From: Asterias rubens
Taxonomy: Eukaryota
Reading direction: 5' to 3'
NCBI RefSeq assembly: GCF_902459465.1
Contig: NC_047068.1
Span: 14,198,001 to 14,262,000, forward strand
DNA: 64,000 nt
This document shows, in pieces, positions 18,871-64,000 of this stretch. Each line of letters starts with the position of its first letter. The first letter of the stretch is position 1. Made by a program: the position numbers and the translations under genes. The notes under the pieces are model-generated. The model had not been told where the DNA came from. It ran no database searches and saw nothing but the letters and a program-made list of their open reading frames with translations.

Positions 18871-19577
18871 CAAGATGCTACAAGTGGATGAGTTTTCTGA
18901 TAACATCATTTCTCTTGCCAGAAATTATGGATACCAATTTATTATTGTTCAATTTGGAAGGTTGGTCCAATTAAAAAATTGACCATTTCTGACATAACTT
19001 ATTTGAAAGTTTGATGACGTTTGTTCATTGTTTCTTGTGGGTTTTATACACTATTTAAAACTACTAATAGCTGTATTGGTGTATTTAAGTAAAGGAATCA
19101 GTGATAATCACAAATTGTACCGGTAAACAGCTCCCCCCAAAATGTTGCAATTGATTGATTCAGACAATTTTATCTATCTCGCATTGAACTGCTCAAAAAC
19201 CGCGTATCTCATCGTCAACTTGTTTTTTATGCACATCAGGGCGATTTTACAAAAGATATATACAGTTTGACAAAGTGTCAAGCGAAACGTTGCACTGAAA
19301 CAATGAAAGTGGCTTCTAAAAATAAATCAGTAAACCTAAAAAACCATCACTGAAAATGCTCAGTCAAGATAGATTTAATAACATATTTACAGCAAATAAT
19401 ACAAAGCATTATTTTATAACAACTTACTGTCCAGGTTTCGGTGTAACAAAGCTCTTAAGCCAAAACAAATGCTGTTTTAACAAAACCATTTACTGAGAAA
19501 AACAATAGCGGGTAATCAGTCACAACTAAAGTGAAACTTGTTCTTGCAGAGCAATATTTTACGGTAAGCAGGTGTCA

Positions 19578-19946
19578 GGGCCAAATTTCATGAAGCTGCT
19601 TATAAAAACATAAATTAGCTAAGCACAAAATAATTCTGCTTACCAAGAGAAGAATGCCAGCCAAAATACTGGTATCCTGTTTACTTTTTTTTGCTTAGCA
19701 GAATACTGACAATGACAAGCATTTCGATCTGCTCTATGACCAATGGTAATTTGCATAACAGTGCAGTGGCATACAAAATTACTTTGCAAAAAATAACTTT
19801 TGCAAGCCCCCAAAGTGGTAACAAACAACAATATAATGTTATGTGCACAGTTTACAACTGGTTCTCTTCTTACTTATGCTCGGCGGAATTTGTAAAGTAA
19901 TCATAGAATAATTTTCTGCTTAAGCAGCTCCATGAAACTGGGCTCC
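19578..19946. mobile_element. MITE (GGGCC.AATTTCAT termini family)
   Basis: GGGCCAAATTTCATGAAGCTGCTTA ... TAAGCAGCTCCATGAAACTGGGCTCC. Related fragments occur at about 6228, 27000-27350, 43220 and 54625-54745. Confidence 0.65.
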
Positions 19947-22900
19947 GCAGCTGATTTCAAGAAACTTTAGGAAACTGTACAAGTCAAGCTTCACAAGATT
20001 TTTTAGTGGTGCACAGTGTACGCAATAAATGTTGCTCCATTGGACTTACGCCGGTGTGTAAAGTTTTGTAACAGCAGCAAGACTACATTTCCATTGCCCT
20101 TGATTGATATTCATCACAAGTTTCTGGCAAGCACAGCGTATTCATCAGCTCTAATAATCTGTTTGCATGTTAGATTCCAATATCGTCTGGAACAATGACG
20201 TGCTCGATCACAAGTTACCATTTAAATTTAAATTCCTCTCACTATCCAGACAGTTGCTATGTCACACGATTAGGGACAAGCTTTTGCGTAGATACGCAAG
20301 TGATGACGGTGAACACCCATACAAAATTCCGAATGGATGTGAATTGCAGAATGGTACCAGGGTTTGCTCATCTGGAGGTTGCTTTTGCAAAGGCTTGCCA
20401 CGAACCATTTGACATATCAACTGTCTCTATAGTCTTAGCAATTCAAATGTACGCGGTCCATTGTGACCAAGCAAGTTATTGTACCAGGCATTATTCAAAT
20501 CTAACTTGCAAATGGCTTATTGGTGCTCTTTCACTTCAGCAGCTGCAGAGAAACAGCAACATCTTCTAATTTGTTCTAGTTTATCTGAAACAACGCATAT
20601 AATATATTGTAAAATACAATCAAATAATATTAAATAATTTATCATTTCTATGACAAAGAAAATATTTCCACTTATATCACCCAACATTAATATATTCCAG
20701 TTTTTGCCATTAAATGTGAAAAATATAAAAGAATAACGTAATTTGTGATAGAATTTCCAAAATAGTATAGTATAAATGTGTAATTAAACAATCTTTTTAA
20801 AGAAAATGAAATAACTGATCAGATTTCCTCCAAACTATAAAGCATCTATTAGAATAACTATATTTGATTGTGCTATTTATCAACTTCAGGTGAGAACAAT
20901 TCTTTCCTCTATTCTTACAATTGCTTGTTATGATCGGTTCACTCGTTTGAAGAATAAATCTCATATAATAATAATAATAACAGTGTTTCCTTTTTAAAAA
21001 TGGGAATGCATTATTTCAGTTGTTTTGATTCTCGAGTTTCTTCCCAGCAACATGAAAAGAAAGGTACCACTCTCAAGATGGGGGGGGGGGGGGATAGAGT
21101 TTACAATCTTTCAAAGGAGTTATAAAATAAATTATGGGTTTTAAATAATATCTCTAATTAAATTAGCAACAACAAATTTTAACAGAAACAATTGCCTTTC
21201 ATTCCTGAATGAAAAAAAAGAAGTATGTAGAACAATCGATCAGTGTGCAAGAATACTGGTGTAGAGTTCACTTTTGCAAACCAGCTTTTGCTGAGAATAG
21301 CCATTCATTAATTGATTATTTTGTACCAGTATATTCTACCCCATCTATACACCCTTAAAATGCAATATTAAATATAACCCAACCAAATACATGTAGTACA
21401 CTCTTGGCAGAGTTTGGGTGGTTTCCTTGAAGGATGATGGTGGTTTGGTTGGTACAATAAATTTGACAAAACATCCCCATTTAAGGTAGGGCCATAGGTC
21501 GGTTTTTGTCATAATGCTGAAATATAACATACACATAGTTGAAGGAATCTGTGTTGTATGTTTATAGATTCTACCAAAGTAAGTCTAAATCGATATGGCA
21601 AGTGGAAAGTGAAGGCAAAATATGTCTCGGCAGGCAATATATTTGAAATTTGAAATAAAATTTACAAAATTGGGAACACATAGTCAAAGCTCTTGGTAAC
21701 AACCATCATCTCTGGCTTAAGAATAAAGCCAAAAAATGCGGTTGTCCCACGACTCTGTATGCTCCAGAAAATGTATTTAAATGCATACTATTTATGCCAG
21801 CAAAAATGTCTACAAGGCAAGCTCTTGGCAAGCTAGCTACCAAAATTATTAAAAGAAAACGAATTGTGAAGTTGAATTTGTTTTTGTGTCTGCATTTATG
21901 CACTAATTTGCAACTAAAATAATCATCAAAAGCACTCGGCACTATTGACCTCATTTTGCTTAAAAACACTTAAATCAAATGTCAGACAAACTTTCCCCCA
22001 ATCATTGGTCACCGCATTACCGGGCCAATCTGCAGTAGTACAGTCACTATCAGTACATGTACACATACACATAAAGCTTGGACATGTACATGCCTCCATG
22101 GAAGTAAAATTGATCTAAAAAATTATTGTCTGAAGTTTAGGTACTAGTTTTTAGGTACCAAGCTTCTATTTTCAGCATTAGTTCGGAAAGCTAATGAGTA
22201 CGCTGAAAGAAACATTGTAAAACAAAAAATGTTTAAAACAAAATGATACATGTGTCTTTCACACTGCCACAGCCACATAGAGTTAACATAATTCAGGATC
22301 TACTTTTCCTAATGCATAGATAGATATTGATTGTCCAACACCAATCCAACCTAATTTCAAAAATATGTTAAGCAAAAATAACAAAAAAAGTGGCTAGCAG
22401 AGACAAATCTCGCTAAGCAGATACAGGTTACCAGAACCAATATACCATGTAATGTGGAGTGTTTATGACTGGCTCCCCTGACAATCTCTGCTAATAAGCA
22501 GAAACATTTGCTAAGCACAACTTTCTGAGAAACAGCTTTACGAAACTCTAAGTCATCAGAATTACAGAATATAATGAAGTAAATTAACAGCAGAATTGAA
22601 AGGACACACATATTTATTTTTTTTTTAAATTACACACATTTAGGCTATGTTCATCCAGTGTAGGATGAAGCCCTGCTCATAAAAATGCCCATTTTTCCAT
22701 AACCCCTGATGTTGTAGTACATACTGTTCCTGCATAAGATCTAACGACATTCCTTTATACATTCTTTCACCTATTATAAAAGTTACAATTAAACAATTTT
22801 TCAGCCGAACCCACCACATAGAGCAAGTTTGATTAAGGACCCTCGTTTTACCCATAGTTCAACTTACTCTTAGTGAGCGTTTGCCACCTCAACGATGGAT

Positions 22901-23768
22901 GGAATGGTCTAGTCGTTAATTTGTGACCAGCCAATTGTGGCTTTATCGCCCCGGTGTTTCTTGCAGATTGTGCTGCATAACCTTGTAAACACATACAAGG
23001 TGTTATATTGATGAGTTTCACAACTCAAACATGTAATTTCTTTTTTTCTTTTTATGCAAGTTTCCAGACACACAAGGTCTGAAGGCCACTTCAAGGTGTG
23101 GGCTACAACCAACTATTTTTAATTTTTTGCATGGCCCCCATAACAAGAACAGTTTGGAAACCTGGCATCATGCCTGAAGCTTTCAAGAAATATCTCAAAA
23201 TATTCCTGTTCAATGATTGATTGCTTCGACTGTTTTCCCATTACCAGTGCCATTATTTACATGGTTATTGAATAAGTTTCTTGTAAAGCGCTGTGGTACC
23301 ATGTTTAAGAGCGCTCTATAAATGCCCAATATTATTATTATTTCAGCAACAATCAATGGAATATGAAAAAAATTGTTGGGAAAAAAAAAGAATTATTTAT
23401 TGCTCACTTCGACAATTGATCTAGCCTGACGACATCATTTGAGAAGTTCCCGTCAACTTCAGTGCGCATGCACTATGGCGTCAAGAATCACTAGTTAACC
23501 GATGGTCCATGATCGAACTTGCTCATAATTTCACAGCAATGCACATTATACATCTCCCCTTTCATTTGTAGCGTCGTATAAAACATTATGTACAACCACT
23601 CTTGCATACGGAACCAATCCAACAGTCTTAAATGCATATCAAATGTATACCAACCCTTTGAAGGAATGCGTGTATATAATTGTTGCAATTAATAAATATA
23701 ACCAAAATAAATAAATATATATAGGTCAAAAGTGAGGGCTGATTGTAGTGAGGTGTTGAACTTTTTAA

Positions 23769-24852: not shown

Positions 24853-27800
24853 CTATCGGCTGTGCAATGTCCCATGTACACGGAATCTATACAAACAGGT
24901 ATACTCCAAGTTGCCATGGTTACTGTGGATCTTCAGCTCAACAGCTGGTATTGGCTCTACATCAGAATTCTATAACAAGGGAGAAGGGTTGACAAAATGG
25001 TCAATACAAAATATTTTGTTTTTTTTACAAGGCTGTTTACTTTGCATCTTCTATATCACTTTGACTAAAATGGCATGATACTTGGCCTTTGGGAATATCT
25101 AATCACAAATATTCTGATTTTTGCAAGGGAAAGGAAGAATGGCATGCCTGCAATTGGGAACACACTACATAAAGACAAGAAACAAGTTTACCTCAATGGC
25201 AAAGAACTGCAACGGTGGACCTTCTTGGTCGTAGGAGTAGGTCCCTAGAAGAATGCTCTCACTGGCCTCGTCATCTTGCAGACCCTGGTGACAAGAATCA
25301 AAATAAACAAATTAAATTGCCGTCAATAGAAAGGGTTTCTTAACAATATTTCACCGATCAGATATTTTAAAGTGAGATAGAACCAAAACTAAGAACATAC
25401 TTTCAAAAACACATTTCCTATTCTTGAAAAGGTTATCAAATCCAACAAAATTAAGACATTTCTATTAGTTAGTACATATGATTTAACAATATTTATAATA
25501 CATGTCTAATACATGTATAATACTTATACAATCCAGGAGATTTATGTACACAACACATCACACATTTGATGTCCTAGTAGGTGGAGGGTTTCTCTTTGTT
25601 CAATCAGACAATCATGAGGTTGAAGCTCATGAAGGCCCTCAAAACACCATACTAAACAGATTTGAAAGCCAAACAAATTAATAATATTGGGTTCTTATAT
25701 AGCGTTTTATTAACACCCCAAAGGGCGTAACAAAGTTACATTATAAATGGGAGTTACATTATAAAGTACGAGACCTATTCCTTTATAGCATCGTGCTACG
25801 AGGTGCTAAGGTGCAATAAGCAGTCAATCAAACCTGCAGCCCAATTCACAAAACGCTAGGATTAATCCTATCTCAAGTTAGGATGAGTAACTCGTCCTAA
25901 CTTAGGATGGGTTCAATGCATCCTAACGTCTTTGGATGCGGAATTTAAAGGGATGCTGCAGTGAATTCAAATAAAACAGTTAATTTTGCTGTCATTTATT
26001 TCTGATATATGTATTGAACATCAATAAAATGTGTTTGTTTATTCCCGACATATCTCACTTGCCTAATTAGCGAATAAGTCATGCCCCCCCCCCCTTTTGT
26101 GGATTGTAACCGCCCCCCTACCATCGACGTCAGGTCGGGAATTCAAACATATCGTCGGCAAAAAGAGTCTGGTCCCCAACTACACGCGCCTAGGTACCAG
26201 GCCACAAAGTGCACACGTCTCTATATGCACACAGCCAGGGGGCCCGACGGCTCGGGTTACCGACATGACGTCACGTTTATGCAAATGAAGGCTCCCAAAT
26301 TGAAAAGAATTCAACTTGAGAAGTGACACAACAGGAACTCAAACACAAACTCTACTGATAAAAAAACACCAGAGCTGGAGTCCGGTGGTTCCTTACAACC
26401 AACTTCAAGTATTTTGGATACAAAAAGAGAAGAAATTATGAAACGTAATTTGTTGTCTTACCCAAACACTAAACTCCTTTGGTGCACTATCAATGGTTCC
26501 AGTCGGCGATAGTGATTTGGGGATGTGTTCCAATGAGAAGGCACTTGGTTTAATAATCCCAGCTAGCTGGATCACCATGTAACCCTGGGTACCTTTGAAA
26601 GCCCAGCAATTACCAGGCTGTACATCGGGCTGTGTAGAATAAATAGTTTGGACATCGTTAAATTACTAAACCTCTTACGTCCATGTCATGCGAGGCAATT
26701 TACAGGCAGCCAGTTCCAGGCAATCGCAAAGAAGAAAAGGTATTTAAATTTGAATGTTCACACATTTTTCATGAGGATCAGAAGAAATTGTTTGAAAAAA
26801 TACTGCAGCTGGTCGTCTGTAAAACTTGCCTTGTGTGTCAAGGCCCTTATGTTCTGTAACATCTTTCAGTACGAGTATGTTGCATCAGTGCAAAAAAACA
26901 GATCTTGAGTTTGCAAAATGCTGAATACTCAGTGCAAACAGAGTCTTGGCACATACATAGAGGAAATCATCTAATCTGCTTGAATGGTGCAAAGTGACCA
27001 GAGCCCAATTTCATAAAGCTGTCTAGCAGAAGATTCTGCTGAGCTAATTCCTTCGCTAAGCAAGAAACAAGTGGACTACCAGTTACAGCAATGGTAACTG
27101 TATAGTAGTTGAGCTGGTAACCTATTTTTGCAAAGCAAGAGTTTTTTGTGCTAAGCAATTTTTTCTGCTTATACATGCTTTATGAAATTGGGCCCTGGGC
27201 CCAATTTCATTAATCTGTTTAGCAATTTGCTAAGCAAGAAACAAGTGGAGTCACCAGGTACCAGTCACAGCAATAGTAACTGTATGGTATTTTGGCTGCT
27301 AACCTTTTTTTGCTAAGCAAGAGTTTTCTGCTTACTTAAATTGGGCCATGGTCTAAAAATCACCGACCAAACACAGCAATGCTGATTCCCGCTGTAAAGT
27401 TGACCTACCTGAATGACAGTGTGAGGTGAGTTGGCCATATGCCAGAGTGGTATTCCAAAGATACTGAGCAGCGCAGTCTTAGAGTAGTGAGTCTTTCCTT
27501 GTGAAACCCTTACCCTAACCCCAACCAAAAACAGCAATGCTGATTCCAGCTGTAAAGTTGACCTACCTGAATGACAGTGCGAGGTGAGTTGGCCATATAC
27601 CAGAGTGGTATTCCAAAGATACTGAGCAGAGCAGTCTTAGAGTAGTGAGTCTCTCCTTATGAAACCCTTACCCTAACCCCAACCAAACACAGCAATGCTG
27701 ATTCCAGCTGTAAAGTTGACCTACCTGAATGACAGTGCGATGTGAGTTGGCCATATACCAGAGTGGTATCCCAAAGATACTGAGCAGCGCAGTCTTAGAG

Positions 27801-52807: not shown

Positions 52808-55800
52808 TCAACTTTGGGGGACTGAGATGAGTTGAAATTCTAGAGAGATGTTACGCAATAAAAATGGAGCATCGGCAACGAAGTAAACATCAGAGGAATG
52901 TTCAGCACTATGGTCCCAAGCCTGGTTGACCTTGTGCAATGCTACAACGGCTGACCGCCAGATATCTGCATTTGAAAATGAAGAGAGAAAAAGGAAAACA
53001 ATGAAAGAAGGAGGTAAAGTAACTGGACACCTTTGATAATTGTCAAAGACCAGTATTTTGCACTTGATGCATCCCAGCATATGCACCAAATAACAAACAT
53101 GTGAAAATTTGGGCTCAATGGGTCATCAAATTTGAAAAAGAATGAAAAGAAAAAACACCCTTGTAGCATTACTTTGTTTTCTTTCAGATGCCTAAAAAGG
53201 CTTCATATTAAACCTCTTTCTCAAAAGCTACAGAGGGGGGCCATTTCTCGCAATGTTTTATACTATCAACAGCTCTCCACGATGATAGTAGAAAACATCC
53301 CTTGAAATATTTCTGTTTGAAATGTCATATTTAATGAGAAATAAATAATCTAATTCAGTGAGCGTTTTATTCATTTTTGTTTTGGCATCGCTGCAGTGCA
53401 AAATTCTAAATCGTTTTTTTCACTGTTCGGTCGTGACCCAGATGGCCGATCGATCTCAAACCGCTACAGGTTTGTTAGTTTATGTATATGGTGGATTACA
53501 TAAAGTGCTTACACTGCTAGCAATTGTTTTTGCTAGCAAAACCAATTCTGTAATGTTCCATTAAAATGAGACACAGCTCTCTATGTTAAAAAAAAAAAAA
53601 AAACCCACATTTTCTTCCCCAAACTGACCTGATGTTTCTGCCATGATGTCACACACCATAGAGTATTCACCATATCTAACGAATAATTCATGAGAGTCAT
53701 GACCTCTAGGGTATCTCGATAGGACAGGTTCCCTTCTCACTAGTTCAGTTTGTCGAGACGATGAGGAGTAAACTTTCAGAGAAGAGAATCCTTGCCGTTG
53801 GAGATTGTATTGAAATCGCAACAAACCCTGGAGAAACAAAGAATCTTCATGAGACCGAATCAAAAATAATGCTCCCTTTTTAAGTTTAAAATCTCGAGGC
53901 GAGACAACTAATTAAAAGGGTTTCAAATAGTCTTAAAGAAAAAGAAATACACCACCAATATGCAAATCTGTAGGATTTGAAACTTTGCATGGTGGAAATG
54001 CGATATGGAAAGGTTTGCGGTAACACCACGTAATGACTATCTCTAATGAGTTGGGGTGGTTCTGAAAAGAACCGTTGGTTTCAACTCAGTATGCTCTGAT
54101 CGTCGATCAGTATGCTCTGATCGTCTTCTGGAGAAAGCTGAGAAATATGCAAATCTCTTGAGGATAAATCTTTTTTGTGTTCTGTTCTGCTTAGAGAGGA
54201 GCCCTTCCCCCTCAAAAACACAAAAGAAAAAAAAGAAAAAAAAAACAACAAAAAACCCACACCCTACACCCCAACAAACAAACAACCAAAATAAAATTTA
54301 TTCACCTTAAAGTTGTAGCTTCTCAGAGTTGCTGCTTTTGTTTCATTCACTGCTAGGTACAGACCACTGGTGTTAGTGACCATATACGACCCTGCAACAA
54401 TGTTTGGCTTGACCGTGGGATAAAGGTCATCACTGGGTAGATCAAAGGTCATGTTGGTCACTTTAAGCATGGAGGTAAGCTGCTGTAAGTCTTTCCTGGT
54501 GAGATAAATTAAAAATTAGACCCTGGCTAGTTCAATAAGGTCCAAAATATAGCACAGTCGAACCAGCAGGTTTGCCATATTACTTATTTCACAAATCCTA
54601 AAATGGGTTTCACTCCTCTTGAAAACACCCTGGGCCCAACAATTTAATGAAATTCTGTGCTTATATCTACTCATAGCGTCACGACCTTAGCAACACACTG
54701 TAAGCCCAGAAATCTATGCTAAGCAGCACCATGACATTGGGCCCAGATCATCCAGGGTGTTACATATCAGAAGATCTCTAGAATATCGACCTCACCACTA
54801 GAGATTTGGAAATAAAATTGGCTGTTTTTCTTCAGTTAATGATTAGCTCACATCCTTCAAAAATATGTTTGAGGTAGAGGGAGGTTCATGAAAAAACTTC
54901 TGATTTTAGGTCAAATAATAAATCACTGACAAAAAAACATGAAATTACTGCTACAATTTCGTTGCTAGAATTACCCAAAAGATGAGTTTTCCCATTCCAA
55001 TGCAGAATTTAACCTTCCTATAATAACTTATAAATGGCAGAAAACCGCTCAAATTTTCACGTTTAGTTTGCTTGAAACACAAAATTGTACATTGATTGCT
55101 TTAATGCCTTAAATTTTCTCCAGTAAAACCTACGATAGGCCCCAAGCCAGGCACGTGACAAATTTGGAAAACTTACCTAACAGACTGTAAAGAAGAGGAA
55201 GCCATCGAGTACTTGTGGTTATTCAACAACAAAGCTGTCTTCTCTAGAACCATGATAATTGTTGTTACTGAAATTCAACAGCATAAAAAGAGTAAATGGC
55301 CTGACGTTTCAACCCTAGCAGAGTCGTTCTTGGAGGCTAAATGACAACACATGAACAGGTATCTAAGTGTAATGCGCAGTGAAGTGGAAATACATGAGTT
55401 GAGTTAGAAAGCACACAGACAAAAAAGCAAGGGGTAAACAATGAACATCAGTTTTGTTTCCAATACTTGTTTATTCATGTAAAGGGATGATAGATCATTG
55501 GCTTTGGGAAGAGACCAATGGGAGACTTTCTGGGACGATAGAGGGCAGCAGACTTACCGGGTAAATCCATTGTTCTCAGAATTATGCGCATGTTCAGAAC
55601 TACATAAACAATGGACATTTACCCGGTATGTCTGCTGCCACCTAGCGTTGGAAAGTCTCCTATTCATGACCTATTGCTCAACAAACACACCAGGAGGCAT
55701 CGTCATCCTTTTAAGTACCACCATCTTTTACAGCTGCCAGAGGCGCCCTTGCCTGCCTGCGGCTCAACCACATTATAGTTGCATCCTTCAGCGTCTCAGC

Positions 55801-58800
55801 TGCAAGAAACGATGATTATCCTCCCAAACTATGATTATTATAATCCCACACGCGAAACTGTAACTTCCCCAGTGATTTGAATAGTCAAAGCATACCATTA
55901 AGCCCCGGAGTCCGTTGGTAGAATAACGCCTTGTTGTAGAGACTAAACCAGCCGGCCGGTAAGGTCACTCCCGATGGGTCATAGCTAATATTCTTCCATT
56001 TGGCTGACAGTGATAGGGTTCTGTGTAATGTGTCAAAGGTCCCATCAATGGGAAGGATTGGTGTCGCTTCTGAATTGAAAAAAACAGAAGGAGAAATAGT
56101 AAGAATAATTATCATGTAGGAAACTAACTCCCGTTTCAGACAGAAGCTCCAAAATTGGGTCGAACCAAATTCTGGATGAAGTAAACAAAAAGTTTGACAT
56201 TTGAAACAGTTAGGGGTGACTGGACGCGGTGGGTATGTCGAAAGATCGACTGTTGCAGTCGTTCTGAACCACTCTGGAGCGCCTTGGTTTCAGACATTGA
56301 TCTTGTCATGAGTCGAGCCAATGTAATGTTATTTTAAGTTAACCTGTCTGAAACCCAAAACTTATTTGGGTTGACCTAGAGTTGCTCCTAATATATATGG
56401 TTTGGCGAGACTCTGCAGCGCCTGTCTAAAACGTTGAGACCCTGTCAAACCTAACCCTGCTCAGGAGGTGGGTTGAAAGCTCTTGATCGATGTCAAAATT
56501 CCAACATGTGTCAGAAGCCGTAGTGTAATAAATTTTGATCCATTTGAGCATGCGCACTACAACCAAGAATCTTTTTAAAATGTGAATTTTTTACTGGCAT
56601 GAAAAAATTGGGACTTATTGGGAATGATGCTCATATAGAAACACTGGTGCACATGTTTGAAGCGCAGTGACAGGGAGGTTGGGTCAATTGGAATAAGGTT
56701 GAGAGATTTTTAAGCACGGTTGATTTTGGGTTTGGGGAGATGCCCTAAAATTTATCGTCGAGGCAGAAGTATAAGTATATGAGTGAGAAAGAAACAACTT
56801 TACCGACCAGAGTCTAGAGGAAGTAGAGAAACTGAAAGAGTTTACCTGGAAAGTCATTCATTGTTGGTAGAATGATAACGTCTGGAGAGGAGGCTAGACT
56901 GATGTAAAACTGCCACTGAGCTTCATAAGTATTCCTGCATTCGGGTTCAGAGAAGAACATGTATAGCCAGGGAAATATTGAATTGTAAGGGCCTTGTCAC
57001 ACGAGGCAACTTTCACAGGCAACTTGGAGGCAACCAATTGCAGTGCATGCTACAGGACCACTTTTTCAAATATCGTCTTACGACCCACAAGAACAATCAG
57101 CGAACATTAAAATAAGAATGCGTTTTCTTCTTTGAGATTGTCTGGAATTGGTTCCCCATGAATTGCCTCGTGTGACATTGCCTTAAGAAATGCATTAAAA
57201 GTGTGTACATGAAATAACCTCCATCTCCATCCCTTCCCATTCTTGAACATTTGAAGAAAAAAGAAAAAAGAAAGAAAAAATGTCTTTGTTGAGCATCAAT
57301 TTTGGATCGGGCGGGTTGATTCTATGAAAAGCGCTTGAAACCGTTTGTTATGAAATCGATATGGTTAGAAAGATGTTTTAAAAGTAGAATACAATGATCC
57401 ACATAAACATGCCTTGAAATTGCGTGGTTTTGCTTTTACTTTGCGAACTAACACGTTTGGCCATTTTATAGAGTCAAAAACTTGACTCCACAAAATGGCG
57501 TGCCATGTTAGTTTACGGCGTATGAGGAAAACCATGCAATTTTGAGGCATCTTTGTGTGGATTTTTATATTCTACTTTTAAAACAGCTTTCTAACCATAT
57601 GCATATTATAACACACGGTTTCAAACGCTTTTCAGAGACCAATCCAAGGCAACAATTCCCACAAATTTTTTCTTAGAATGATTTTTTACAGATGCTTCTG
57701 CTGTTGCAAAACAAAAAAATATAAACTTTCCTCTATGCCAAAGAGATTTCACCAAATGCACGCAACATGCAAAAAATTGATTTGTACATGGCTGATGGGT
57801 GTGAGATAATATGGAGGTTTAGCTGCACGTTACTCAAGCAAAAACCTGAATGTGAACGTACAAAAACTTTTTTGTAAAAATCTCATGTTTTTAGCATACC
57901 ATTTCTCATGTAAGGTATGTACAGGAAGACGTCATACGTGAGCATGAAATAAGCCCAAAGTGGTGCCTAATCTATCTAGAAACGACACAATTTTCTGACG
58001 TTCACGTTCAAGTTTTTGCTAGCTTAACTTGCAGCTAAACCATACAGAAACAACAACGTGCCTTTTTTGTGTCTGGAGATCCAGTCTAGGAAGGTAGCGC
58101 AGACTCCTCCCCCATCCGACACACCCTCTGTTGTCAAACCCTGGAGATATCGACCCACACCACATCACACACGAACCTTGTTTGACGCAATCACTGCCAA
58201 ATATACTGAGATTTCTCTGCAGAACAAAAACACAGCATAACACATTTTGTTTTCAAAGATAAAAACTTAAAGAATATTTTTAAATATTTAAAAACATCAG
58301 TGAAATAGACACTTATGATTTAATGATGATCCTCTTCCCACCTTCGAAAAAGTAAGACTGAGGTCAATTTGTAAAAAGAAACACAAGTTGTAATAATAAT
58401 AATAATAATAAGAACACTTATAGTGCGTCAGTATCCACCACAAGTGATGCCCATAGCAGCTGTGAAAACGTGGGTTTTGAGCGCCTCTTTGAACTTATGA
58501 ATAGAAGACATGTTACGGATATTAAGAGGCAGATTATTCCAAAGTAAAGGACCAGCATGAGAAAAAGCCCTGTCACCCCAATTGTTGTGGGTTTGGGGAA
58601 CAACTAGTAACAAAGAAGTGGACGATCTAAGACAAGGACAGTGTGTGAAGAGAACTCTATAATATGATGATATGATTACATCATAATTGTCATAATTGTA
58701 TTCTTAAAGGACTGCTCACACAGTACTGGGTGCCTGCAAGGTGTCAATTAATACAAAGATTGTTACTTTTCTTTTAAACTAAAGGCTCTCCACTTACACA

Positions 58801-61800
58801 ATGGAAAGTAATCAATCGGTAGCTAGCCCATGGAAGCAAAAGATTCTGTATCTTGGTAGTTTATTTATTTATTTTTATTTTAAATCTTTAGATTTTTATT
58901 TTAAATCTTTAGACATATACAGTTACTGCAGGTTGGACAGGGGCTGTCAAGGTTAAAACACAAGTACAACAACTGTCATCAAAAGGTGTGTAAAACCAGA
59001 CCTCTGTCAATGATAAAAATATAAAAAGGTAATAATATAAAAAGGAGATTGCACTCAAACATTTAAAAGTCACATACTAGAAAACATTTAAACAAAGCAA
59101 ATCTACATTATTGCAAAAACAGCACCGACAACAGAACACCATAACAACAGGCCGGAAAGGACAACAATTTAAAAAAAAACACAGCCAAACACAAATGGAC
59201 TAAAAACCCACGACAGCCAAATAAAAACTGGTACAGAGAACAACTTTTAAAACAATGAAGCAGGAGCTAAAAATAATATAAATATAAAGTAATGATTTTA
59301 TTTAGTATGAAACATCTATGATGACAGTTTTTTATTTATTTTTGTCTTGACCTGGACAATTTTAAATGTATATTAATGACCGAAGATTTAACTTTATGTA
59401 CCTGATACTCCACAGCATCTTCCAATGTTCCATAATAGTCCCACTCAGACATACCCGGTGGTGTGGGCTTTTCAATAAACGGCGCCCACCCAAAAGTACC
59501 GTTGAGCAGTCCACCCCACTCATCCCACAGTGTAGGGCTAGATGCAAAGTTGAGGTAGCTACCAATCCAAATAGGGGTGGACATGCCAGCAGGGAGGCTG
59601 AGGGGCATGGATAGTACAGCTGTGGAATGAAGGATGGCATCTTGAAACAATTCAACACAATCTCAACAATTTGTGAAACGATCAAGCAAAATAAGTTGTT
59701 GGTCGGAAATATTACTATAGAGAAACAAGCCAAAAAGGGTGAAATTTTCAACAACTTTTTTGTTTGTAAATTAAAATGACCCACTATATCTTATTTTATA
59801 TTGGCAAATTCGTTCCTGATAAATAACATCAAAAGAGGTTAAAATCAGAATTGAAAGAAAATGTGCCAATGTATGTTCAATAAATAACTTGACTTTAACC
59901 TCCTTATTCTCCGTTTCAGTCTCTGGTAAATTTTAAGCACATTCACTCATGTTACCTTTAAATTGTTTTGACATAAGACCACCTCCAAAGATGAATATGA
60001 TGGGATGGTTGCCGTGGTACAGGGTGACTTCAGGTCCCAGACTAAAAACAGTATCAACCAAGCACTGAAGGTTGCTGTGGAATGCCTGTATCACCTTCAC
60101 ATAACAACAGCAAAAGAATTTTGTTTTATTATTAATGAGCATTGTTTAAATGTACACAAGTTTTTGATAGCTAGTCATAGAGTTATATATAAGAACTAGA
60201 GGGCGCACTGGTGATGCTTCTTGCACAAACGCGACGGGACTGCAAGATGACAGGCGCGCCATTCTGTACGTGCGTCGAATATGAAATACACGTTTAAGTT
60301 TTTTTTTATTGAACGCTCACGCGATGCTGTTTGTTCAACTTACAAAATGGCCGCACAAACACACGCTGTGAGATGGCTGTTTTGTCAACTTAGAAAATGA
60401 CTGCCTGCGCGCATACCGGGGCCCGTATATAGGCCAGTGCGCCCTCTAGTTCTTATATATGACTCTATGTAGCTAGTACATTTCAATTTAATACCCTGTA
60501 GAGGCCTAAAAGTGGTCGGTACTGCAGTTATCATAGCGGCAAGAAAATGCAATGTGTAAATGTACAACGTAAAAGAAATCCAGGAAATGTTTTGTTAAGA
60601 AAAGGGATTTGCCTTAGGTCTCCAGTCACTAAATGAGTAAAACAATTTCGTTAAGAAAAGGGATTTGCCTGTGGTCTCCATCCACTCTGTAGCTATAACA
60701 TACTCTGTCTAAGCCACTAAGGCTTTGATAAAAAGGCTAGTTTGTATCAGGCTTGCTTCGATAGCAAAAACAAATGGAGATTTTTAGGGTGTTTAGAAAC
60801 CATTATTTTATTTGCTTTTTAGATGCAAATTTCTCTCTGGAGGATTGGTAGAGGTATGAACTTTTTATTATCATGTGCTTTCAGATTGAAACTATACAAT
60901 TTTCATTAACAATTACTAATACAGTACTTTGTGATATACAGCTACCCCCATCACACCTAATTTGTTCTCACTATGTTCTGAAAAATGTAGTCTTGTTGCA
61001 AGATGAACGCAATGTGCCTGGCGAGGAGGGAGCGAGCGGGGGATCGCGATAGCCGAGTGATAGTGTGAATAACAACGTCTTGCACCAAGACTACATATTT
61101 CAGAACGTAATGAAAACCAATTTGGTGTGATCGGGGTATAAAAAGGGAACTACAGCATCTCTAGAGGTTTGGGGGAGATTCTCCTCATAGTTACCTCTTC
61201 ACTGGAGTTTTTATTCAGTTCAGAGGTCAGCCAGTGATCACACCTAAACACTCATAACAAAAAAACATAATAATCAAGATCTCATAGGATGATAACAGAT
61301 TGGAAAATTTACATAAAATATCTTATATAATCCATAACAATGCAAAAACAAATGTTCTAACTGTCTAACAGCAAAAATCAAGACAAAATCAAACATCTTG
61401 AATGAAATTGGGTTTCACATAGCCTGAGGTTTACATGGCAAATTTTCGATTTGAACTATTAAACAAATCGTAACTTGGTCGTTGGTTCGCATCCTACCAG
61501 AGTGATTTGCCTGTGGATTTACTCTCACAGAACTCGGGAAAGTACTGAGCATACAGTGTCTTATAGACATCGGTGTAACGTGAAAACAAAATTTTTATTT
61601 TCGTCCCCGGTGCAGCACTAACATCCATCAAATCATGCCTTCACAAATAGCACCATGATTCTTACCAGTTGATTCCGATAGAAAATTCGCCATGTTTCTT
61701 GACAAGTCCAAGAAGTTGTTGAAGAGCCACATTGCTGGAATGAGTCTTGTACCCCTGAAAGAAGGACGAATACAATATACAACTGAATTCAAATGACATT

Positions 61801-62633
61801 GTGAATGAAAGCAAAGGACAGTAATTTCCAAAATTTAGATAAAGGGATAATTTACGTTCATCATCATGCTTATTTGGATTGCAGCAATCAAAATGAGTAC
61901 CAATGATGATTTGCTGTGTTATTTCCTCACTTTTGCAGTATTTCAAAAATAACGTGGATCACACCTCCTATAAAGAATGCATGTCTATCACTTGCATCAT
62001 ATTGGGAGTCAATTCCTTTGTGCATAGTTTGGACTCCAGAGTTGGCAGACAAGATAGGCACGTGTAAGTAAACTGTGCCTTGCGCAAGGGGTCTATAAGG
62101 ATTTGTTGTTGGTATGAGCTAAATAATCAGTGAGTTTTTAGATGGACGTTTGGTCATAGTTTGTTTTTTTGTCAACGTAATGGTTATCTATAGGCAAAAC
62201 TCACCTATAAAAGTGTCAGCTGAACACAGTGTCTATCTTCTGAGAAAACAGCAAAAAACTCTTAAAGTGTTTTCACAAGAACGTTGAATTCATCCTTGTT
62301 AAAGTGAGGTGGCAGTGGGTACCGACTAGCCACAACGATTACACACGGACACCAACCCTCAGAAATCTGAGAATTGATTCATGCATTATTCCTTTCCCAG
62401 ATTTAAATTTTTTAATACTTTATTTTTGAATAACGGGGGATATTTCAGCCTCAAAATTATTTTTACTACCATTACCATCTTTATCAACAAGGAGCCCTAC
62501 CGGTAGAAATTTCAAAAATATTGTCAAGGTCAATACTAAACGATGACCCTACCTCTAGATTGGAAAACATTCTTACCCACTCTAGGAGGAATCCATCAAT
62601 GCCTGCCGTTTTGGCTTGTAGCAAAAGAAATTC
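52808..62633 (-). CDS. GH99/GH71-like glycoside hydrolase (TIM barrel plus C-terminal domain), 5'-incomplete, 12 exons, 534 aa in window
   Basis: Exons 62633-62577, 61754-61666, 61243-61195, 60094-59956, 59640-59402, 58216-58062 (GC donor), 56934-56846, 56069-55896, 55243-55177, 54495-54306, 53827-53629, 52965-52808. Total 1605 nt in one continuous frame ending in TGA. Motifs AKTAGIDGFLLEWG, FSIGINWCDHW, HPIIFIFG, SISPGFDNRGCVGWG, NTYEAQW and PTMNDFPEATPILP parallel GH99/71-like motifs (GIDGxxxxW, SVGPGYxD, TSFNEWHEGTQIEP). The gene structure is well supported; the family assignment is from motif recall. Confidence 0.8.
56989..57182. mobile_element. Harbinger-type MITE
   Basis: TAA|GGGCCTTGTCACACGAGGCAA ... 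TTGCCTCGTGTGACATTGCC|TTA. Confidence 0.7.
58389..58650 (-). mobile_element. CR1/L2-like LINE 3' fragment
   Basis: [39 protein letters not shown] followed by a (TTA)n tail. Confidence 0.8.
60175..60470. mobile_element. MITE with ~36-bp TIRs
   Basis: CATAGAGT(T/C)ATATATAAGAACTAGAGGGCGCACTGG at both ends; perfect 27-bp core at 60185-60211 and 60434-60460. Confidence 0.8.
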
Positions 62634-62673
62634 CTTCAATTAAAATAAAAAAACAGGGTTGAAAGAACGTTAT

Positions 62674-63570
62674 AAGGTTATAAGTGAAAAATTCAAGGCA
62701 AAACGTGTTAACAAACCCTATGCTAATTCAAGTATTTTATTTTTTTCCTGCCATACTCCTGATAAAAATGTTGAAATCTTTGTGAGAACTCATTCCCGAA
62801 ATTTCACAAAGGCAAGGCTTGATCATTGACTTGGTGCCCAACTCATCATGATAATACAAAGGAAACTGTCTCACCCTTCTAAGACTCAGCCATCCTTGAA
62901 ATTACAGGGAAAATATTTTGTTATGTTGAAGGTTATAAGTGAAAAATTCAAGGCAAAACGTGTTAACAAACCCTATGCTTATTCAAGTATTTTATTTTTT
63001 TCCTAAAGGCAATGCTTGAGGGCGCTAACTGTCCATGCTTGTTACATGTCTGCATGTAAGCTTGCGCCATGTTTTCATGAGTTGAGTTATAGTAAAGTTC
63101 ATGTTCAAGTTATTGCTCCATTCTCTACAAGTAATTACAAACCCTATGCTAATTCTGGAATTTTACATTTTCCTTAAGGTAACAATTGAGGGCGCTAGAA
63201 ACTTTCAATGCTTGTTACATGTCTACATGTATTGTAGGCTTGCGCCATGTTTTCATGAATTAAAATAAAGTTCACGTTCAAGTTACGCTCCAGTCTCTAC
63301 AAGTTTATCCTTACAACTACTACAAAGTGTTTCCATCATCAATTCTACTAAAGACATTTTCAAACACCTCTAAACCAAATTTCCTGCCATACTCCCTTGA
63401 TAAAAATGTTGAATTCTTTGTGAGAACTCATGCCCGAAATTTCACAAAGGCAAGGCTTGATCATTGACTTGGTGCCCAACTCATCATGATAATACAAAGG
63501 AAACTGTCTCACCCTTCTAAGACTCAGCCATCCTTGAAATTACAGGTAAAATATTTTGTTATGTTGAAGA
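62674..63570. repeat. Nested local duplications in a GH99-like intron
   Basis: ~62674-62746 matches ~62930-63003; ~62747-62930 matches ~63383-63570; ~63010-63130 matches ~63180-63300. Confidence 0.8.
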
Positions 63571-63654
63571 TCAACATATTGAGTTGATTGTCTCAATTCC
63601 TTAACGTAACTGGACAACAGAGGGCACCATCACTTTTGTCCAATTTGACTGTTA

Positions 63655-64000
63655 ATAATAATAATAATAATAAACCGTTCTTTTAAAGCGCATTACACAC
63701 GGAGTCCCAATGCACTGTACAAAGTCAGAAAGAAAAAACAGACAAAACTAGTTGGAGTTTAACAAGTGATTTTTGAGAAGGCGTTTGAATTTATCCAGAG
63801 TTTTAGCGTCTTTGATGTTGCGGGGGAGTTTGTTCCAATAGGGTAGGAGAAGACGTAGAAAATGCACGCTGGCCGTAAGACTTAGTAGAAGCGGATGAAC
63901 AGGCAAGTAGAGATTGTGATTGAGAGCGGAGATTTCGAGAAGGCTGGTATTTGTGAACAAGTTCTTGCAAGTATGTAGGTGCGTGGCCATGGATACAGCT
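63655..64000 (-). mobile_element. CR1/L2-like LINE 3' fragment running off the window
   Basis: PYWNKLPRNIKDAKTLDKFKRLLKNHLL followed by a (TTA)n tail at ~63655-63672. Confidence 0.8.

Follow-up and report, generated by a model that had tools for sequence, protein, structure and literature searches.

How does an intron-rich animal gene come to match bacterial proteins from end to end, and what might its product do in a sea star? The gene that raises these questions lies at 52808-62633, on the minus strand, of a 64,000-nucleotide stretch of Asterias rubens contig NC_047068.1 (positions 14,198,001 to 14,262,000, hereafter the window). A first-pass annotation, made from the letters of the DNA alone, had read it as a glycosidase resembling glycoside hydrolase (GH) families 99 and 71 and had proposed that a bacterial enzyme was domesticated in this lineage. 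Our follow-up shows that the locus is a real sea-star gene and leads us to consider it probable that it encodes a secreted putative enzyme of the GH99/GH71 clan and goes back to a very old bacterial transfer.

Gene model and splicing

The model comprises 12 in-phase exons and 11 introns, with splice sites refined using an annotated orthologue from Asterias amurensis (P0009, 659 aa) as a guide. The spliced exons total 1608 nt, or 535 codons plus a stop; the exon number of the first-pass annotation thus held, whereas its protein length of 534 aa did not. An AG acceptor precedes every exon, and all donors are GT except for a GC at 58061-58060 after exon 6, which gives one GC-AG intron. A GT donor 21 nt 3' of exon 6, which would insert 7 aa in frame, was dropped for the GC donor, in keeping with the orthologue and because RNA contigs end exon 6 at 58061/58062. 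The sea-star model is 96% identical to P0009, whose residues 126-659 match the window in 12 alignment blocks. Open reading frame (ORF) pieces on the minus strand at 52808-62639 hold AGIDGFLLEW|G, IGINW|CDHW, QCLVDTVF, PGFDNRGCVGWGRSLRYLPR and MNDFP|EAT, as well as WRSAVVALHK...LLRNISLEF followed by a stop codon, so that all the peptides on which the glycosidase reading had been built were found where it had placed them.

Assembled RNA from public runs agrees with this model. A contig of 2471 nt (run X1, record 2) joins 60092-59956, 59619-59402 and 58216-58061 without gaps, corresponding to exons 4-5-6, and a second (X3 record 18) links exon 2 to exon 4 over a gap of 49 nt, the length of exon 3. 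The gene is transcribed and spliced, and the joins through exons 2-3-4 and 4-5-6 fall at the predicted borders.

Residues 1 to ~125 of P0009 found no match in 62640-64000. The gene model is therefore truncated at its 5' side by the window end, with about 125 N-terminal residues lying beyond it. In the orthologue, the signal peptide falls in this part, as does a conserved ADLTSNKLTRxHDG..W block with which the barrel starts, and comparison with the hemichordate gene suggests that the missing residues are probably encoded by three more 5' exons. In all, 12 of about 15 exons, making up the 3' four-fifths of this genuine, transcribed asteriid gene, lie within the window.

Animal orthologues, bacterial relatives and the question of transfer

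An exhaustive HMMER query with one 108-aa translation of the largest exon (window 59339-59662, minus strand) against 1.84 billion representatives returned only 7 proteins. Two of these were full length (~640 aa), and a follow-up search traced them to Anneissia, a crinoid, and to Branchiostoma, where they are listed as uncharacterised. Overall, every one of the five echinoderm classes yielded orthologues, as did two hemichordates, Branchiostoma and two chelicerates (Centruroides and Tachypleus). Introns, spliced RNA contigs and animal neighbour genes at the orthologous loci indicate that the gene is integrated in animal genomes and transcribed; the flanking genes are Anillin and Rad50, PRELI/CRAL-TRIO, and Cullin-binding, and the upstream PRELI/CRAL-TRIO neighbour is common to the crinoid and the hemichordate.

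The introns themselves speak to the age of the gene. All 11 window introns, which bear out the earlier count of at least 11, have the same position and phase in the hemichordate Glandiceps, and 10 do so in Anneissia. Of the nine introns that lie in the annotated portion of the scorpion (Centruroides) gene, eight coincide with ambulacrarian positions and phases, as do two further ones, a phase-1 intron splitting the DxxE dyad discussed below and a phase-0 intron at NFK|G, for a total of ten common positions with identical phases; no in-frame solution was obtained for the last scorpion junction (~P0009 residue 607). Among the animal orthologues examined, those other than amphioxus have 13 to 14 or more introns. 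Because the animal proteins form one clade with intron positions shared across the protostome-deuterostome divide, an intron-rich gene appears to have been present already in the protostome-deuterostome (nephrozoan) ancestor. The ten shared introns therefore place any transfer before the protostome-deuterostome split.

This evidence bears directly on the idea that the gene was acquired in the echinoderm or ambulacrarian line and gained its introns there, as the first-pass annotation had supposed. It is true that the best-conserved and most complete copies are found in echinoderms and hemichordates and that the bacterial homologues are collinear. However, the orthologues of Branchiostoma, Centruroides and Tachypleus fall within the single animal clade, ten intron positions and phases are common to the scorpion and the ambulacrarians, and the full-length scorpion gene sits amid ordinary scorpion genes. 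With orthologues in every echinoderm class, hemichordates, Branchiostoma and chelicerates, domestication in this lineage has to be abandoned, and we regard such a recent uptake as extremely improbable. Contamination of the chelicerate genomes, or transfer from one animal to another, is opposed by host-like flanks and introns.

Several orthologues have peculiarities of their own. The Branchiostoma gene (L063 3001-4917) is a single 1917-bp exon of 638 uninterrupted codons between Anillin and Rad50. A possible 5'-untranslated-region acceptor lies directly before its ATG, and no poly(A) remnant was found beside the gene. Since introns are shared among the other animals, the intronless state would be derived, either via retroposition or by wholesale intron loss. 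The Centruroides locus (L064) contains the entire gene, with a truncated RefSeq model of 355 aa. An identical three-exon block is duplicated there at 19311-20538 and 22168-23380, coinciding with the truncated model, and is probably an assembly artefact; the remaining C-terminal exons lie at 25055-26684. In Tachypleus, isoforms P0006 and P0023 depart from the family after ~residue 300, where SPGFDNRGCAGWG would be expected, which suggests a frameshift, a pseudogene or mis-annotation.

The bacterial homologues are ~600 aa long, carry Sec or lipoprotein signals and are collinear with the animal proteins end to end at 27-32% identity, from KKVYADYHGVRYTRxHDG (versus RKVLADLTSNKLTRVHDG) to the C-terminal RNISLEF. 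Full-length members occur in Bacteroidota, Planctomycetota, Armatimonadota, Verrucomicrobiota and Bacillota, in at least 50 species. When one genome of each bacterial species was scanned by pattern, 53 loci (L003-L055) with extended family matches emerged, mostly collinear along their whole length, including Bacteroides xylanisolvens XB1A, Alistipes, Prevotella, Paludibacter, Mariniphaga, Phycisphaerae, Armatimonadota, Opitutaceae and Clostridia. Further members, from Planctomycetota and other metagenomic sources, came from a profile search; NCBI names one of them 'glycoside hydrolase family 71/99 protein'. The Bacteroidota protein P0025 has the motifs KIDGFFIEWG, IGVNWCD, PGMDNRGCAGWG, W.KAK..LYKEN and IRNISL. 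The near-colinear Bacteroidetes proteins with the same C-terminal domain that the first-pass annotation had described are thus real, being represented by P0025, B. xylanisolvens L007 and about 50 other species.

To place the animal proteins among these relatives, maximum-likelihood trees were computed under LG+C20+F+G4 with 14-17 animal sequences and rooted on four distant bacterial relatives. The animals formed one clade with support of 100/100 on a long stem (0.86-0.92). In the rooted tree they stood beside an Opitutaceae pair (82/71), inside a clade (95/89) with Bacteroidota and Bacillota; a clade of Planctomycetota/Armatimonadota type fell outside it.

Several points weigh against reading this tree as a bacterium-to-animal transfer. 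Forcing the ingroup bacteria to be monophyletic cost 7.5 log-likelihood units and was not rejected by the approximately unbiased (AU) test (p = 0.199). The outgroup branches are very long, and the animal clade departs from the species tree by placing the chelicerates among the deuterostomes (83/83). It is chiefly the taxon distribution that argues for the nesting of animals within bacteria and, with it, for the direction of transfer. That distribution comes from four large protein searches, including those of 5.8 billion clusters and 1.84 billion representatives, which found no eukaryote beyond Ambulacraria, Branchiostoma and the two chelicerates and which were word-seeded and directed at predicted proteins, not genomes (tblastn). 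An older bacterial origin is still favoured, because the animal range is very patchy and the outgroups are exclusively bacterial. We conclude that an ancient bacterial origin, older than the protostome-deuterostome split, is likely but not proven.

One alternative involves no transfer at all: an ancient cellular gene would have descended vertically into animals and been lost in nearly all other eukaryotes and in most animals. The test is compatible with animals as sister to all ingroup bacteria, the animal stem is long (0.86-0.92), and the introns are dense and old. Against this, no homologue from a non-bilaterian eukaryote or an archaeon was found among the 5.8 billion clusters or the 1.84 billion representatives, the more distant relatives and the nearest ESM Atlas clusters are all bacterial, the rooted tree sets the animals within bacterial diversity (95/89), and dozens of independent losses would be required. 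We consider this explanation unlikely. A broad, vertically inherited metazoan family, the outcome that the first-pass annotation had set against its own proposal, was found in part: the family is vertically inherited within Bilateria, but its range is very patchy and its outgroups are exclusively bacterial.

A transfer in the opposite direction, in which bacteria such as gut Bacteroidales took up an animal gene, would accord with the many carriers among animal-gut Bacteroides, Alistipes and Prevotella. However, the family spans at least five bacterial phyla, including environmental Phycisphaerae, Armatimonadota and Opitutaceae, the bacterial divergence is deeper than that of the animals, bacterial paralogues and domain fusions lie inside polysaccharide utilization loci (PULs), and the outgroup root falls among bacteria. 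We judge this reading to be very improbable. Both vertical descent and animal-to-bacterium transfer are less parsimonious than an ancient transfer from a bacterium to an animal, although the tree by itself is compatible with either.

In the history that we favour, a single, very old bacterium-to-animal transfer would have taken place before the protostome-deuterostome divergence, after which Ambulacraria, cephalochordates and some chelicerates would have retained the gene while it was lost many times elsewhere; we infer both the direction and the date. The bacterial origin put forward by the first-pass annotation survives only in this much older form, favoured by the patchy range, the bacterial outgroups and the nesting (95/89), with the AU test (p = 0.20) on the other side.

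Predicted fold and proposed activity

The full product would be a protein of ~660 aa that enters the secretory pathway, as judged from the N-termini of the orthologues; the signal peptide itself lies outside the window, which counts against the case for secretion. The AlphaFold model of P0009 (mean predicted local distance difference test, pLDDT, of 77.5 for the whole protein) shows a (beta/alpha)8 barrel to ~residue 400, four helices at 402-485 and a beta-sandwich at 488-656. Modelled separately, the C-terminal part reached a pLDDT of 89 and consists of a helical bundle of ~85 residues and a jelly roll of the carbohydrate-binding module (CBM) type, which matched the carbohydrate-binding jelly rolls of CBM29, CBM22, CBM36 and BcsB with Z of 9-11.

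GH99 ranked first for the barrel in both structure comparisons. With VIA-align, model residues 48-417 superposed on GH99 (MANEA, BxGH99 and BtGH99) with Z of 23-25 over 296-306 residues and a root-mean-square deviation of 3.2-3.7 A, and Foldseek gave E ~1e-10 and template modelling (TM) scores, by target, of 0.62-0.68. GH71 (Agn1 and AnGH71C) followed with Z of 19-21, and generic TIM-barrel hydrolases scored ~15. The predicted fold is thus a (beta/alpha)8 barrel of GH99/GH71 type, as the first-pass annotation had anticipated.

Sequence profiles did not assign the family to either of these two. The Pfam scores of the animal proteins are all below the gathering thresholds, with P0009 reaching 15.7 bits against a threshold of 34 for GH71 (PF03659) and 12.9 against 33 for GH99 (PF16317), and the family likewise stays below threshold for WbsX; these scores argue against membership of these families. 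Sub-threshold GH71 matches were given by nine of 14 members (best E 1.9e-5), and the weak GH71 hit spans the barrel. A bacterial paralogue (L005:3891-5984) scores 41.6 bits on PF16317 through its N-terminal half, and because of this one paralogue the family appears to border PF16317. No NCBIfam model for the family was found, eight single exon translations matched nothing in Pfam, a PDB sequence search with one exon alone and with the family profile gave nothing relevant, and a single-exon query of the ESM Atlas returned only noise. Because all Pfam scores of the animal proteins are below threshold, we regard the family, on sequence grounds, as a putative unclassified sister of GH71 and GH99.

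Six residues (D137, E142, D336, N337, D387 and E390) are invariant across 11 animal and three bacterial proteins. Of these, D387 and E390 lie within T-M-N-D-F-P-E-A-T, confirming that the NDFPEAT motif carries an acidic D/E-x-x-E pair conserved in animals and bacteria, and the first residue of the pair is Asp in 14/14 aligned members. In GH71 and GH99, a D/E-x-x-E dyad occupies the same barrel position; Asp is nearly exclusive to GH71, an inverting family with an Asp base and a Glu acid, and Glu is nearly exclusive to GH99, which is retaining via a 1,2-anhydro sugar (PMC12394665). The N-D-F-P-E motif departs from the ExxE dyad of GH99 (E333/E336 in BxGH99, E404/E407 in MANEA), and D387/E390 match the DxxE dyad of GH71. 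Two points temper the assignment: the dyad loop has the lowest AlphaFold confidence (residues 385-398, pLDDT 36-56), and its equivalence to the GH99 dyad is suggested by motif and fold, not by residue-level superposition.

By analogy, the protein would most likely be a secreted endo-acting alpha-glycanase in which the dyad acts as in GH71, Asp serving as general base and Glu as general acid in an inverting hydrolysis. The C-terminal jelly roll may either brace the barrel or hold a polysaccharide. The putative substrate would be an alpha-linked microbial or dietary glycan, for example an alpha-glucan or alpha-mannan-like polymer.

The gene neighbourhoods of bacterial members are carbohydrate-related. 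One member has a sulfatase, GFO/IDH oxidoreductases and rhaM as neighbours on a scaffold of 643 kb, which also carries two paralogues. In B. xylanisolvens, the PUL encodes SusD, a fasciclin protein, DUF6528, the family gene, GH31, GH2-malectin and a SASA esterase. In Paludibacter (L005 3891-10110), two tandem paralogues share one PUL, the first with a sorting tail of the type IX secretion system (T9SS) and the second fused in frame to a complete GH31. An ORF upstream of the Paludibacter homologue that scores as GH99 was considered as a bona fide GH99 and proved to be a second paralogue of the family. These neighbourhoods point to a complex alpha-linked glycan.

We also considered that the protein might be catalytically dead, a lectin-like or structural glycan-binding protein. 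The family is without known activity in bacteria or animals, which also tells against our proposal of an enzyme, the dyad loop is poorly modelled, and the first dyad residue is Asp rather than the Glu of GH99. However, neither the dyad nor four more acidic or polar residues of the barrel vary between bacteria and animals, GH71 itself works with an active DxxE dyad, and bacterial members are fused to, or lie among, glycosidases of active type. We find this explanation quite unlikely, and retain the putative enzyme.

The predicted domains can be followed through the exons of the window, all on the minus strand. Exon 1 (62577..62633), which judging from the Glandiceps gene is the fourth of the complete set, encodes EFLLLQAKTAGIDGFLLEW with the invariant D and E of the DGFxxEW block, and the intron flanking it shares its position and phase with Glandiceps, Anneissia and Centruroides. 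Exon 2 (61666..61754) encodes GYKTHSS...FSIGIN(W) and is spanned at 61664-61753 by RNA contig X3 record 18, whose 49-nt gap equals exon 3 (61195..61243, 49 nt), encoding (W)CDHWLTSELNKNSSEE. Exon 4 (59956..60094; VIQAFHSNLQCLVDTVF...FGGGLMSKQFK) is present in RNA contigs X1 record 2, X2 record 10 and X3 record 18, the first of which joins it through exon 5 (59402..59619; AVLSMPLSLPAGMSTPIWIGSYLNFASS...EDAVEYQ) to exon 6. The latter (58062..58216; RNLSIFGSDC...SPGFDNRGCVGWGRSLRYLPRLDLQTQK(R)) is followed by a phase-2 intron with the GC donor at 58061-58060. Exon 7 (56846..56934) encodes NTYEAQWQFYISLASSPDVIILPTMNDFP and carries the Asp of the DxxE dyad, which the following phase-1 intron, common to Glandiceps and Centruroides, separates from the Glu in exon 8 (55896..56069; EATPILPIDGTFDTLH...YQRTPGLN). 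The helical linker starts in exon 8, continues through exon 9 (55177..55267; VTTIIMVLEKTALLLNNHKYSMASSSLQSVR), which is helical in the models, and ends in exon 10 (54306..54495), where the first strands of the C-terminal jelly roll begin. Exon 11 (53629..53827) encodes further jelly-roll strands and a variable loop of low model confidence, and exon 12 (52808..52965) encodes DIWRSAVVALHKVNQAWDHS...LLRNISLEFQLISVPQS and the TGA stop (52810-52808), with W..A..(L)YK.N...RNISL motifs that are conserved in the bacterial homologues.

The introns hold features of their own. Between exons 10 and 11, 54033-54078 (minus strand) matches the Rfam histone 3' UTR stem-loop RF00032 with 35.7 bits against a gathering threshold of 34; no histone ORF is evident just upstream, and the match may be a remnant or due to chance. 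The intron 5' of the first window exon contains, at 62674-63569, two pairs of direct repeats, one of 172 nt at 62760 and 63398 (98%) and one of 76 nt at 62674 and 62929 (99%), which suggests recent local duplication or a tandem element. Three intronic intervals (57228-57615, 60138-60525 and 61496-61689) show very high summed RNA-contig depth with many mismatches and loose ends, a pattern typical of expressed interspersed repeats and not of the glycosidase gene.

Significance and comparison with known systems

If active, the enzyme would define an uncharacterised branch of the GH71/GH99 clan found in PULs of human-gut Bacteroides and in invertebrate deuterostomes, and one biochemical characterisation would annotate hundreds of bacterial and animal genes. 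Candidate bacterium-to-animal transfers for which shared introns give a date before the protostome-deuterostome split are also rare, and the gene is one of them. With heavy later loss, affecting vertebrates, tunicates and most protostomes, and with a derivative in amphioxus that lacks introns, it is a good test case for telling ancient transfer from differential loss. More tentatively, and with rather less than even confidence, we suggest a new family at the CAZy level, combining a GH99-like barrel, a GH71-type DxxE, a linker and a jelly roll, with a specificity outside GH71 and GH99. Such a family would have passed from a bacterium to a stem bilaterian more than 550 million years ago and been kept only in a few marine lineages and chelicerates as an extracellular enzyme to digest, or defend against, microbial alpha-glycans.

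We found no paper on the animal gene, and its RefSeq LOC identifiers led to no functional study. The main texts of an amphioxus transfer survey (PMC13350694) and of a metazoan transfer compendium contain no glycoside hydrolase term. CAZy entries for GH71 cover fungi, bacteria, two plant entries and a rotifer, with no deuterostomes (PMC12394665).

Among characterised systems, GH99 (human MANEA, BtGH99 and BxGH99) provides the best match to the barrel and has an acidic dyad of the same i, i+3 spacing in the corresponding barrel position (PMC12394665). In contrast, the sea-star protein is only 12-14% identical to these enzymes, carries DxxE in place of ExxE and adds a helical bundle and a jelly roll to the barrel; the protein is no paralogue of MANEA, in line with the separation from it drawn by the first-pass annotation. 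The GH71 alpha-1,3-glucanases (Agn1p, AnGH71C and MutA) share the DxxE dyad and the combination of barrel and C-terminal beta-sandwich, which in GH71 has eight strands and is tightly packed against the barrel (PMC12394665). Unlike GH71, the sea-star protein has a four-helix linker of ~85 residues between barrel and sandwich, and its C-terminal jelly roll best matches CBMs, not the GH71 sandwich. As modelled, the sea-star protein would thus join a dyad of GH71 type to a barrel that most resembles GH99, with a further module at the C-terminus.

The bacterial proteins named 'glycoside hydrolase family 71/99(-like)', such as B. xylanisolvens XB1A L007 and Planctomycetota P0031, belong to the same family and share its three domains and invariant residues. 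Their genes differ from the animal ones, which have up to 14 introns, in being intronless and in lying in PULs; the products bear lipoprotein or Sec signals, and some have a GH31 fusion or a T9SS tail. A parallel for the history is offered by msp130, likewise a proposed old bacterium-to-animal transfer with bacterial homologues and a patchy range among marine invertebrates, integrated and with introns (PMC11878542). It belongs to a different protein family, and what sets the sea-star family apart from it is dating by shared introns, which places the gene before the protostome-deuterostome split.

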